Source of the DNA: Entomortierella parvispora E1425
Lineage: Eukaryota; Fungi; Mortierellomycota
Assembly (NCBI GenBank): GCA_020891255.1
Contig: BQFW01000002.1
Span: 620,001-684,000 of the forward strand
Direction: 5' to 3'
DNA length: 64,000 bases
Both the position numbers and the translations under genes were made by a program. The notes below the pieces were generated by a model. That model worked only from the letters and a program-made list of their open reading frames with translations, was not told the origin of the DNA and made no database searches. This document shows, piece after piece, positions 37,479 through 41,215 of this stretch (position 1 is its first letter; the number at the start of each line of letters is the position of its first letter).

Positions 37479-38087
37479 TTAAAGGAGCATGGATCCAGCA
37501 GCCATGGTGAACAAGGCCGCAGTGGAGGCAAGGGCGGCCTTGACAGATCCTGAACCTGTACTGGTGCTCTTATCCTCCTTTCCAGCAGTTCCAGTGGTAG
37601 TCTCAGCAGGGGCGGTGGTGGTGGCAGTAGCAGTGGCGGGGTCGACAGCAGCTGTGGTGGTGACGGGAGCGACCACGACGGGATCCTCACCCTTGATAGT
37701 GAACTGGGCAGAGTACGACTGCAAGGGAACGGTGTTGACGTGCAACGAGTAAGTTGATCCGGTGGTCAAGCCCTTGGGGAGAGTGATCTTGGCAGACTTG
37801 TTCTCGAGGCAGTTCAAAGTACCGAGCGAACGGATGCCGGGAACGCGCATCTGATCAGTGCTGCCCGGAATGTGATCCTTGGACATGTAAAGGACAATGT
37901 CGAGCGCCTCCTTATTACCGGGCTTGCAGTAGTTGGACCAAGAAACGGTCTGAGTCTCACCAGCGGTCCAGACCGAGGCAGAGACGGGCTCGGAGTAGAA
38001 AAGGCGACCCTCATCAGGGGTGAAGTGTGCAGTAACAGAGGCGATAGCCATGGAGGCGACGGCGGCGATGAGAATGCAGAACTTCAT
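37479..38087 (-). CDS. Secreted, probably GPI-anchored Ser/Thr-rich cell-wall protein (Kre9/Knh1-like N-terminal domain)
   Basis: Signal peptide MKFCILIAAVASMAIASVTA, WTAGETQTVSW, YSAQFTI, Thr/Ala stalk, hydrophobic C-terminus. Confidence 0.8.
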   Translation of the reverse strand: MKFCILIAAVASMAIASVTAHFTPDEGRLFYSEPVSASVWTAGETQTVSWSNYCKPGNKEALDIVLYMSKDHIPGSTDQMRVPGIRSLGTLNCLENKSAKITLPKGLTTGSTYSLHVNTVPLQSYSAQFTIKGEDPVVVAPVTTTAAVDPATATATTTAPAETTTGTAGKEDKSTSTGSGSVKAALASTAALFTMAAGSMLL

Positions 38088-38729
38088 GTTTAGTTTGAGT
38101 ATGTAAAGGGAGGTGAAGGAGGGATAGTTATATGGTTGTGTCAAGAAAGTCGGCGACGATCAGGGTCGCCGTGCCTTTTTATAACAATGCAGACTTCGGA
38201 CGAACTGCCTGCCCACTCCCGCCGTTTACCACACGTCGGAAACGATGACCTTCGGTTTCTCGAATTCTCTCGACAGAAGCATCAACAAGAGCTTTAATGA
38301 GACACAAGAACGCGCTTCTTGCAATCTCCAAGGAAATCCAGCGCACTCGCGCAAATTGACCAGAAACCAGAGACGGTGGGTGTTCGACTGGCTCCCAACT
38401 TTTTTCTTTAAATATCGTTTTTCAAGCCAACAACGCACTCCAGGTAGTCTATTCATCACGGCAGCCGTGAAGAAACTAAATCCAGCCTATCTGCAGCAAC
38501 CAAAGGCAGCCCAGTTTATTTGACAAGGAGCTATACAAAATCATACCATACTTCAAGAGCAAAAATGAATGGAAGACCGCTGATTGTCTGATGGTGGTTG
38601 GTGGGTGGTATGAATTGAACATGATTCATGTTCGAGCAAAAAGAATTCAAAACGGTTCATTCTCCTACACGGCTTCGATCCGGCTGAGAGAGCTTGTACC
38701 AGGGCCATGTCAGGTCTCACTCCCAGCAC

Positions 38730-40574
38730 TTATTCTTCCATTTTCAGAGGCTCTTCTTGTTCCTGCGAGGTCTGATCCTGCGAGGTCTGATCCTGCGAGG
38801 TCTGATCCTGCGAGGTCTGGTCCTGCGAATATTGCTGATGTGAGGACTGTTCCTGTGAGGACTGTTCCTGTGAGGACTTTTCCTGTGAGGACCTGTCCTG
38901 CGAGGTTTGTTCCTGCAAGGTTTGTTCCTGCGAGGCTTGTCCCTGCGAAGCTTGTCCCTGTGAGGTTTGTCCCTGTGAGGTCTGTTCCTCCCAGGCTTGT
39001 TCTTGAGAGGCCTGTCCCTGCGAAGCTAGCTCTTGAGAGGCCTGTCCCTGCGAAGCTAGTTCTTGAGAGGCCTGTCCCTGCGAAGCTTGTTCCTGAGAGG
39101 CCTGTCCCAGCGAAGCTTGTTCTTGAGAGGCCAGCTCCTGGGACGAAGGCAAAGGTCGTGGTTTGTTGAAGTTGGAATCCCGCAGCTTGAAAGCTTCCCT
39201 TTTCTTCCTGATCAAATCCGAGGCAGCCGCGCTGATGCCGCAATGACCTCCATGAACTCTCAGTGCCAACTTTTCCACCTTAACTTCATTGTAAAGCCGC
39301 ATGGGAGGGCCGTTTCGATAGTGCGGGTTTTGGTGCACGGTGCATGGAAGCGTGTCCAAATCATCTGTCGTCAATTCGTATTGATCCAAAGCGCGAGTTC
39401 GTGTGATTCTGTTGACGTATCCATCGTTGGGATCCTTCTTTGCCCTCAGCTTCAGTGGATGCCGCCCATAGTAAGCAAGTCGGCAGTTCCGACAAAGCAG
39501 CCAGGTTAGATCATCGTCGTCCTTATCTTTAATTGGCAGTGTAACTTCGGACTTGGTCAGGCCCTTCATTGTCAGATCATGGCATCGGTCGCAGATGAAA
39601 TATGAGTACTTGCACGCAAGGGCCATAAACGTCTTGTACTTGCTTTTTGGAGGACCCAGGTTGTTCTTCTCGCAGATTGTTTTCCAGGCTGGGTAGGACC
39701 GGCAGCCGTCCAGCCACGTCGTGTTCACCAAGGAGATGACTGCAACCTGAGAGAGCGGTAGGTACGATAGTATGACATGCCACACCTCAGTCGGAACCCA
39801 AGCGCAAGGATTTGTTCCTTTGGGAGCTGCAGCCCGTATCTCCATAACAGATACAGCGTCCTGCTTGGTCTCCCCGTGTTGCCTCTTCGTCCTCTTGGTC
39901 GGTCTTGACTCTGGGTCCAGAGCTTTGTGTTCATCACCGTCTTCGTCCTCCTTCTTGACTTTTCGTTTTTTGCCCCCCACTCTAGGCTTTTCAGCCACGC
40001 TTTCAATCACAGTCGCAGTAGGGGCTTTCGTCTTTTTGAAGGACGTCGAGGCGGTGGAGGTCGACTTGGCTTTCTTGGTGGAGGCTTTGGCGGGGGTTTT
40101 GGCCTTTTTTGTGGGAGTCGTGGGGGTCGCGGTAGTTGATGGGTTGTCAGAGGTCAAGGAAGTCGTGGGAACTGGATGATGTTCAGGATCGACACCTTGT
40201 TTCTTCTTGAGAACCTTTTTCCTGGATTTGAGGTCCGAGCTATCTTTTGCCTTTAGAACGGGAACTTGCTTCGATGCCGCCGACTTCTTGGGGCCCATCG
40301 TGGTCGCGTCCCGCTTTGATTTGGACGTTTTTGTACCCGCGTTGGTCTCGGAGGTATCCATATCAGCGCCATCAGCAGTGCCATCACTCGTGCTGTGTTG
40401 CACCTTGGGCTGAATTCGCTTCTTCTTGGCTGAAGAAATGCGAGCCTTGGCGGCTTGCTGTGCCCTGAACGTGGCCGCCACCTCCGCCAGAGCTGCCCTA
40501 GCTTGCTCCTCGGCTAGTGCCTGTGCTTGTGCTTTCTCGGCCACCGCTGCCAATCGAGACGATGTTCGCACCAT
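38730..40574 (-). CDS. F-box protein with XPA-like Zn-finger/DNA-binding module and C-terminal SQ-repeat array (intronless ORF)
   Basis: Likely start MVRTSSRL at 40574. Basic disordered N-terminus, F-box VPTEVWHVILSYL, CDRC..CRNC, RITRTRALDQYEL..DL..NPHY..PMRLY..VHGG, then (SQxQx)26. Confidence 0.85.
   Translation of the reverse strand: MVRTSSRLAAVAEKAQAQALAEEQARAALAEVAATFRAQQAAKARISSAKKKRIQPKVQHSTSDGTADGADMDTSETNAGTKTSKSKRDATTMGPKKSAASKQVPVLKAKDSSDLKSRKKVLKKKQGVDPEHHPVPTTSLTSDNPSTTATPTTPTKKAKTPAKASTKKAKSTSTASTSFKKTKAPTATVIESVAEKPRVGGKKRKVKKEDEDGDEHKALDPESRPTKRTKRQHGETKQDAVSVMEIRAAAPKGTNPCAWVPTEVWHVILSYLPLSQVAVISLVNTTWLDGCRSYPAWKTICEKNNLGPPKSKYKTFMALACKYSYFICDRCHDLTMKGLTKSEVTLPIKDKDDDDLTWLLCRNCRLAYYGRHPLKLRAKKDPNDGYVNRITRTRALDQYELTTDDLDTLPCTVHQNPHYRNGPPMRLYNEVKVEKLALRVHGGHCGISAAASDLIRKKREAFKLRDSNFNKPRPLPSSQELASQEQASLGQASQEQASQGQASQELASQGQASQELASQGQASQEQAWEEQTSQGQTSQGQASQGQASQEQTLQEQTSQDRSSQEKSSQEQSSQEQSSHQQYSQDQTSQDQTSQDQTSQDQTSQEQEEPLKMEE
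38754..39143 (-). repeat. Coding tandem repeat, 26 x 15 nt (pentapeptide S-Q-E/G/D-Q-A/T/S)
   Basis: Units such as tcgcagggacaggcc, tctcaagaacaagct and tcgcaggatcagacc. Counted from the translation. Confidence 0.95.
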
Positions 40575-40824
40575 TCTGAGAGTAAATTTGGGATGGGATG
40601 GAAGATTGGCGCCTTGTGATGCGGTAACAGATGTCAGTTGTGGGGACGAATGTAAAGAGATAAAGGGTGAATGCGAGCAACTGAAGAAGACAATTGTCAG
40701 TGGAGTATGAAGTGAAAACATCATCACGGACCCTTGCAACAAATGATTCATCACGTGAATCGCAACATGATTCTTGTCAATCAGTGTTGCTGATTGAAAG
40801 TGATATGCTCCTGCAAAAAGCACC

Positions 40825-40879: not shown

Positions 40880-41215
40880 ATGTTGGCCTTTACCTCCAAG
40901 AACACATGTCTCTGTGCAATTGTCCTCACCTTACTTTCGGTCATGTCGGCTGAACCTCTTGTTGCGGCATCAGGAACGACAGCCAGTGCCGCTGCTGCCG
41001 TCATCCCAGGCCAAGGAGCGATCGGTGGCATCCACAAAACGACCTCGACTTCTGTGTTTGCCTCTGGTTCAGGTGGCTCCCATCTGCCTTCTGGATCTCT
41101 ACACAAGCGCAGGGATCACGGCAAGAGCTGTTGTCATGACAACTGCGATGACTGTTGTGATGACTGTTGTGACGACCGCTGCGACGATTGTTGCGACGAT
41201 TGTTGCGACGACTGA
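40880..41215 (+). CDS. Small secreted precursor (111 aa): signal peptide, propeptide, KR(R) site, Cys/Asp-rich (CCDD)n peptide
   Basis: MLAFTSKNTCLCAIVLTLLSVMSA|EPLV...LHKR|RDHGKSCCHDNCDDCCDDCCDDRCDDCCDDCCDD*. Single exon with an upstream TATA-like box. Confidence 0.72.
   Translation: MLAFTSKNTCLCAIVLTLLSVMSAEPLVAASGTTASAAAAVIPGQGAIGGIHKTTSTSVFASGSGGSHLPSGSLHKRRDHGKSCCHDNCDDCCDDCCDDRCDDCCDDCCDD

Follow-up and report, generated by a model that had tools for sequence, protein, structure and literature searches.

The gene at positions 38730–40574 (minus strand) of a 64,000-nt stretch from the fungus Entomortierella parvispora E1425 (contig BQFW01000002.1, positions 620,001 to 684,000; the whole stretch is hereafter called the window) encodes a 614-residue protein, which is well supported as an F-box receptor with a module derived from XPA. 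The favoured reading, to which we give a probability of roughly 55%, is that of a nuclear SCF (Skp1-Cul1-F-box) substrate receptor acting on chromatin; damage sensing and a checkpoint switch are a hypothesis. The frame is uninterrupted, with no internal stop on translation, and every element listed for it in an earlier reading made from the letters alone (the sequence-only reading), namely a basic N terminus, an F-box, CxxC pairs, XPA-like motifs and 26 pentapeptide units including 22 SQ units, was present in the order given. The features of the gene, in window coordinates, are as follows.

38730–40574, minus strand: complete single-exon coding sequence (CDS), 614 aa plus stop (P0001); from translation, with the exact protein present in the protein collection with Pfam PF05181.
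40545–40568, minus strand: N-terminal HMGN-like motif RTSSRLAA (aa 3–10); from motif counts in relatives.
39813–40544, minus strand: Lys/Ala/Thr-rich disordered basic region with patches of KKRK type resembling nuclear localization signals (NLS) (aa 11–254); from composition and a net charge of +25.
39663–39809, minus strand: F-box (aa 256–304); from family profile, superposition and Skp1 co-fold.
39456–39629, minus strand: linker helix and C4 zinc module Cx2Cx29Cx2C (C328, C331, C361, C364, then R365); from column conservation and an AlphaFold2 (AF2) model.
39165–39440, minus strand: XPA_C-fold domain (aa 379–470); from profile, Foldseek and superposition.
38754–39143, minus strand: 26 pentapeptide units encoded by a 15-bp minisatellite (aa 478–607), 22 of them starting with SQ; from Tandem Repeats Finder (TRF) and a listing of the units.

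Residues 255–480 were modelled using AF2 with a 66-sequence family alignment, giving a predicted local distance difference test score (pLDDT) of 94.9 and a predicted template modelling score (pTM) of 0.87; a model from the single sequence (pLDDT 35.5) was discarded in favour of the alignment-based one. With the profile of the 66-member family, F-boxes were matched at 3e-5 to 1e-3, among them those of Skp2, FBXL5, Fbw7 and KDM2A, at 3e-5 to 7e-4 (3–4e-5 for Skp2 and FBXL5), and that of KDM2B, and model residues 1–70 were superposed on Cdc4, Fbw7, FBXL5 and Skp2 with Z 5–6, a root-mean-square deviation of 1.7–2.7 Å, and 41–47 core residues. The F-boxes of FBH1 and KDM2A/B were found among the structural and the profile matches. 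The precomputed Pfam list for the protein contains PF05181 (XPA_C) as its sole entry, and no F-box entry.

Skp1 of the same genome (38.9 Mb, 20 contigs, eukaryotic), encoded by a single 159-aa open reading frame (ORF) at locus L012, was co-folded with aa 255–480, producing a score of 0.80, with 0.00 for the best control, a result that may in part stem from model memory of complexes already solved; of 78 solved complexes, 51 came up to that mark, as did 2 of 108 mismatched pairs. Three runs shared at least 64% of contacts, at a partner pLDDT of 61–63, and in the modelled interface the Skp1 C-terminal helices were placed against aa 255–288 and 318–327, the canonical F-box surface, leaving the XPA-like domain free. 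Since many Skp1–F-box complexes have already been solved, the co-fold is taken as likeness, not as proof of binding. The F-box called by the sequence-only reading is borne out by profile, superposition and co-fold, and the F-box as modelled is real. Skp1-like sequence was present at three loci of the genome (L012–L014: G000:C2:2246726-2246851, C9:1403910-1404035 and C6:1654540-1654650), and the C6 copy carries an in-frame TAG within the match, as expected of a pseudogene or of a gene interrupted by an intron.

For the domain that follows, a search of the 614-aa protein against all PDB sequences gave XPA chains as the sole matches (E 0.005), and the family profile reached XPA (2e-10), Rad14 (5e-8) and, in SLC30A9, its XPA_C-like domain (1e-5). 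The stretch aa 389–443 opens with RITRTRALDQYELTTDDL (also written RITRTRALDQYEL) and continues through ...NPHYRNGPPMRLY... to LALRVHGG. Foldseek against the PDB, a check that had been proposed with the sequence-only reading, returned XPA, Rad14 or SLC30A9 as all of its first 17 matches. In an exhaustive VIA structure search (48,161 chains), Rad14 ranked top (Z 8.8, 2.7 Å, 74 residues, model residues 125–198, corresponding to aa 379–452), followed by XPA (Z 8.0) and SLC30A9 (Z 6.1), and then by F-box proteins. Similarity to XPA and Rad14 comprises the alpha/beta fold of the C-terminal subdomain, the motifs ITKT..Y.L...DL, NPH and M.LY, an aromatic-Gly turn with a basic helix after it, and a CxxCR zinc knuckle upstream; the 614-aa protein differs in being fused to an F-box. 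The HGGxxG motif is invariant or nearly so across the family. On profile and model evidence, the XPA_C-like domain is real and XPA-derived.

The TIGR00598 (rad14) model matched the protein at E 2.5e-6 and 27.3 bits (30.4 bits for the locus), below its curated equivalog cut-off of 113.15, and the bona fide Rad14 of the genome lies on another contig (G000:C14:1443993-1444514, 189.5 bits). The 614-aa protein was therefore rejected as the repair XPA of the organism. BLASTP of aa 320–480 against this Rad14 gave no alignment, so the kinship is visible to profiles and structure alone. Within the F-box/XPA_C family of the genome, the rad14 model matched this gene and one paralogue only. Regions for binding RPA, ERCC1 or TFIIH were not detected, the rad14-model and XPA-chain matches spanning only the XPA_C-like domain. 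Residues K141 and K179 of XPA are key for DNA binding; in the HMMER alignment to XPA, R392 and R426 fall on these two positions, and the positions aligned to XPA K141, K167/K168 and K179, and several in the basic C-terminal helix after the HGG turn, carry Lys or Arg in 43–80% of the 66 members. The XPA-like module proposed by the sequence-only reading thus stands as an XPA_C fold (profile 2e-10, Rad14 Z 8.8), and falls as regards the zinc finger and equivalence to Rad14.

In the alignment of 66 family members, C328 and C361 never vary, C331, C364 and R365 are kept in at least 98%, and the region was modelled at pLDDT above 90. Because all four cysteines and the following Arg are invariant or nearly so, the zinc module is surely functional. 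Its geometry differs from that of the XPA finger, which has Cx2Cx17Cx2C and ends 9 residues before ITxT, whereas the spacing here is Cx2Cx29Cx2C, with the last Cys 25 residues before ITxT. No superposition of the module on XPA or Rad14 structures was obtained, the alignments starting at model residue 125, and a C4 finger of XPA type is not supported for the CxxC pairs. HMMER pairs the second CxxC of the family with the first CxxC of XPA; given this shifted pairing, and structural aligners that leave the module out, homology to XPA_N is not claimed. The fungal F-box clade has been described as being without the conserved cysteines of XPA (PMC10810185). The order of zinc finger and then XPA_C is common to XPA and the 614-aa protein.

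A word-indexed protein search gave one relative with the whole protein and none with the excised domain, and an exhaustive HMMER search was used instead, yielding 284 cluster representatives at E ≤ 1e-3, 110 at ≤ 1e-10, and 47 at ≤ 1e-30, with most of the top ~50 matches covering the entire F-box–zinc–XPA_C core. Members were found in Mortierellomycotina (Lobosporangium, Modicella, Podila, Linnemannia, Mortierella, Dissophora, Haplosporangium, Actinomortierella, Entomortierella), Mucoromycotina (Fennellomyces, Umbelopsis, Zychaea, Circinella), the chytrid Phlyctochytrium, and Pucciniomycotina (Rhodotorula, Sporobolomyces), and structure neighbours in the ESM Atlas bring in F-box clusters of Ascomycota. 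An XPA phylogeny from 2023 (PMC10810185) used an "F-box clade" with XPA_N/XPA_C matches as an outgroup; one sentence in that paper is the only mention of the family found in the literature, and its function is unpublished. The gene described here is a member of this fungal F-box clade, sharing the same core at 45–50% identity with proteins of Lobosporangium, Modicella, Dissophora and other Entomortierella; its SQ array surpasses all others seen in length and regularity. On contig 1 of the genome, four to five paralogues lie in a tandem cluster, and there are further, more distant copies. Since the architecture is widespread and multi-copy, it is not a one-off fusion; the combination, for which the sequence-only reading knew of no characterised protein, belongs to an automatically annotated fungal family. 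In a maximum-likelihood tree, the protein and its closest homologue P0002 (73–74% core identity) adjoin a 13-member Mortierellaceae clade with moderate support (84/76), and the tandem paralogues of the genome form a separate clade (100/100). The gene is the sole member in its genome of its clade within the F-box/XPA_C-like family.

The N-terminal 254 residues are low-complexity and basic, with 53 Lys and Arg and a net charge of +25. This region cannot be aligned between relatives, each of which has a comparable K/T/A-rich stretch. The family consensus at the N terminus is R-[RK]-S-x-R-L-x-x-K-A, and RxSxR[LIVM] was present within the first 45 aa (mostly at positions 2–9) in 28 of the 48 full-length proteins among the top 50 matches, over a background of 0.004 per 45 aa elsewhere in the same proteins. 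The variant here is RTSSRL, with RRSSRL, RRSTRL, RKSSRL and RKSARL in relatives, usually followed by x-x-K-A; the second motif position is Arg or Lys in 23 of 33 motif-bearing family proteins (Arg in 13). DNA was compared with four contig sets from other samples, and in those less than 90% identical the alignable DNA consists of the core and of 40496–40575 (the first 26 codons), ending at the start codon.

Motifs of the same type occur in HMGN (RRSARLSA), tardigrade Dsup (RRSSRL) and yeast Dot5 (RRSARIAT, aa 6–13), three cases of binding to the acidic patch of the nucleosome (PMC12487698, PMC13347269). In cryo-electron microscopy structures with HMGN2 and Dsup, the first and last Arg are inserted in the H2A-H2B acidic patch, with the Ser also in contact, and arginine mutations in Dot5 abolish nucleosome binding (PMC12487698, PMC13347269); AlphaFold 3 models HMGN–nucleosome complexes poorly (PMC12487698). 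The two buried arginines and the Ser are kept in the 614-aa protein, and the loosely bound second Arg is replaced by Thr. Further similarity lies in a Lys-rich stretch after the RxSxRL core, in the N-terminal position of the motif, as in Dot5, and in an acidic C terminus, as in HMGN. The match is at motif level and no homology is claimed; at that level, the non-catalytic parts (motif, +25 region, NLS-like patches and acidic C terminus) would resemble an HMGN-type chromatin binder. An HMGN-like anchor motif on a ubiquitin-ligase adaptor, as predicted here from sequence, is a new observation. Four Mucoromycotina proteins (P0057, P0062, P0074, P0094) have another conserved N-terminal motif, RPRR[SA]AAV[RT]A, which is like RRSxRL without the anchor Arg.

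At the other end of the protein, TRF placed a repeat of 15-bp period at 38758–39113 (23.7 copies, 75% matches), and the tail (aa 471–614) has a net charge of −18. It contains 22 SQ, as compared with a mean of 12.0 Ser-Gln or Thr-Gln (S/TQ) in shuffles of its own composition, none of 2000 of which reached 22. A stringent definition of the SQ/TQ cluster domain (SCD) requires at least 3 S/TQ in 50 aa (PMC3564818); with 22 SQ in 130 residues this is exceeded many times, in agreement with the cluster called by the sequence-only reading, and the definition is permissive for Q/S-rich disordered regions. No second copy of the tail was found in the genome. In the sample at ~93% identity (same species label), the CDS indels listed are all in frame, being a 6-bp insertion in the basic region and a 180-bp deletion at 38916–39097, which leaves 12 units fewer. 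Since P0002 has a shorter array of ~8 units, the related sample lacks 12, and the tail cannot be aligned in samples below 90% identity, the array is unstable. Retention in orthologues, of which the sequence-only reading had proposed a survey, was found in part: the exact array is not conserved, and an acidic S/TQ- or Q-rich tail recurs in part of the clade. The Modicella tail has 10 SQ in 94 aa, S/TQ exceeded composition-matched shuffles in the tails of P0001, P0002, P0008, P0013, P0021 and P0027; for Mortierella sp. AD094, Dissophora ornata, M. alpina and M. polycephala, p for this excess was 0.05 to <0.001, and the tails of the last two have zero QS or QT dipeptides. Tails of other clade members are only Q-rich, or short, and other subfamilies have Tyr/Asp-rich tails or a helical domain.

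The array may therefore be a neutral or near-neutral minisatellite expansion in a disordered acidic tail, whose composition (acidic, Q/S-rich, soluble) would matter, if anything does, and not its kinase sites, an explanation that we place slightly short of even odds. It accords with the 15/30-bp period at 75–80% identity and the runs of identical units, with the 12 units missing from the related sample and the ~8 units of P0002 (73% core identity), and with the tails of P0003, P0005–P0007, P0009 and P0010, which are Q-rich with S/TQ not above composition, others being short. Under a loose definition, 25% of yeast proteins have an SCD (PMC3564818), and STQ-rich disordered regions can raise the level of a protein without being phosphorylated (PMC7470947). 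Pulling the other way are the excess of S/TQ over composition-matched shuffles in the unalignable tails of six diverged relatives (P0021 and P0027 being without QS or QT), the preservation of the reading frame by the listed indels, and the extreme density of 22 sites per 130 aa. SCDs can protect proteins from proteasomal turnover, with or without phosphorylation by Mec1/Tel1 (PMC7470947), and by analogy such protection may be an attractive role of the tail in an F-box protein.

Under the favoured reading of an SCF receptor acting on chromatin, Skp1 would dock on the F-box, as homology, fold and the in-silico complex suggest, and the rigid body of F-box, zinc module and XPA_C domain, its fold as modelled above, would present the XPA-derived surface as a recognition element. 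Being basic at the DNA-contact positions, this surface may bind DNA or a DNA-bound target. The RxSxRL arginine anchor and the Lys-rich region could tether the ligase to DNA and to the acidic patch of the nucleosome, by comparison with the binding studies cited for the motif, and the acidic S/TQ-rich tail would be a fast-evolving regulatory or solubilising region, which may be phosphorylated by Mec1/Tel1, and may offset the basic N terminus or stabilise the protein. KDM2A/KDM2B and FBXL19 (CXXC zinc finger), the F-box helicase FBH1 and yeast Dia2 are likewise SCF receptors tethered to DNA or chromatin; they differ in using unrelated DNA-binding modules, and none is known to have an XPA fold or an HMGN-like anchor.

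Several observations weigh against this reading. Where XPA and Rad14 have an aromatic residue in the beta-hairpin (XPA W175), this protein has Gly/Pro, and the second Arg of RRSxRL is Thr. The XPA_C-like fold does not always serve DNA repair, as shown by the N-terminal domain of SLC30A9 (ZnT9/GAC63; PDB 2enk), a non-repair protein in which the same fold is attached to a cation-efflux transporter and not to an F-box. The tandem paralogues have mostly lost the ITKT, NPHY and PMxLY motifs, have no rad14-model match, and suggest that the domain is able to evolve as a general surface for substrate binding. The SQ array is unstable and resists alignment with closely related sequences; the pass of the Skp1 co-fold is perhaps owed to model memory of solved Skp1–F-box complexes. 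Family members are already public, as "hypothetical" or under the automatic names "F-box domain-containing" and "XPA C-terminal domain-containing", and none of the records of RNA runs contained the stretch.

The main alternative, which we regard as doubtful, is an SCF receptor whose XPA-derived domain is a protein-recognition surface without DNA binding, in a lineage-expanded family of diversifying specificity, the chromatin features being incidental. The decay of motifs and of the rad14-model match in most of the 4–5 tandem paralogues and many distant copies would follow from it, as would the tight packing of the F-box on the domain (pTM 0.87) and the occurrence of the fold in SLC30A9. What it does not explain is that the clade of this gene retains the XPA-like motifs and the basic residues at XPA DNA-contact positions, and that the +25 basic region and HMGN-like N-terminal motif point to chromatin or DNA. 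The full model of the sequence-only reading is a damage-sensing SCF receptor, whose XPA-like module would read DNA that is damaged or distorted and whose activity or stability would be switched by checkpoint kinases acting on the SQ cluster. It is improbable: the XPA_C fold with K141- and K179-equivalent arginines, the extreme SCD, and the precedent of SCD phosphorylation shielding a protein from the proteasome (PMC7470947) speak for it, and the lack of the lesion-probing hairpin aromatic, a zinc finger unlike that of XPA, and an SQ array not conserved as such speak against it.

The ATG at 40574 is likely the true start, predicted on the grounds that relatives start 1–8 residues before RxSxRL and that DNA similarity in distant samples stops at 40575. 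Upstream of it, an in-frame stretch at 40575–40823 has GTG as its sole start, and the gene models on public record for the closest homologue (P0002/P0152), which begin at least 37 residues before the conserved MVRTSSRL, are probably over-extended. An origin of the ORF as a repeat artefact was rejected, the 614-aa frame being conserved across genera; ORFs in other frames at 38591–39243 are by-products of the repeat.

Just upstream of the gene and on the opposite strand, an ORF at 40880–41215 (plus strand) ends in repeated CCDD/CDD units (…CCHDNCDDCCDDCCDDRCDDCCDDCCDD). The downstream neighbour at 37479–38144 (minus strand, 221 aa) starts with what resembles a signal peptide and has a stalk rich in Thr and Ala and a hydrophobic C terminus, and its product looks like a cell-wall protein anchored by glycosylphosphatidylinositol. 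Elsewhere in the genome, two paralogue cores are identical to the E. parvispora proteins GJJ68017.1 and GJJ67723.1. GJJ68017.1 (872 aa, "alcohol-forming fatty acyl-CoA reductase") starts with a full F-box–zinc–XPA_C-like core, that of the paralogue at L002:2623-3306 (G000:C1:~1347009-1347641; compared with P0078), and is probably two adjacent genes merged in one gene model. P0050 (Actinomortierella ambigua) and P0053 each carry two complete F-box–zinc–XPA_C-like cores in tandem. In the ESM Atlas, a 323-aa cluster, mostly of Nucleocytoviricota, is faintly like the zinc and XPA_C-like part (template modelling score ~0.33, 94 residues), and a giant-virus F-box cluster is a neighbour in feature space.

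The boldest form of the proposal is a fungal SCF ligase seated on the nucleosome through an HMGN-type anchor, reading DNA structure or damage with a domain borrowed from XPA, and switched or stabilised by Mec1/Tel1 through the 22-site SQ array; we consider it a long shot. If true, it would be an undescribed route from checkpoint signalling to chromatin ubiquitylation, and the protein would be the first enzyme-recruiting protein found with an HMGN-like motif. For studies of XPA evolution, fungal XPA_C-like matches are not to be read as Rad14. F-box proteins choose the targets of SCF ligases, and most fungal ones are without a known target; the family described here reuses the XPA DNA-binding fold as a receptor module. 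If the chromatin reading is true, the family would be a ready instance of the HMGN-like chromatin binders that PMC12487698 foresees as an "untapped realm", and would give early-diverging fungi a means of steering ubiquitylation to chromatin.

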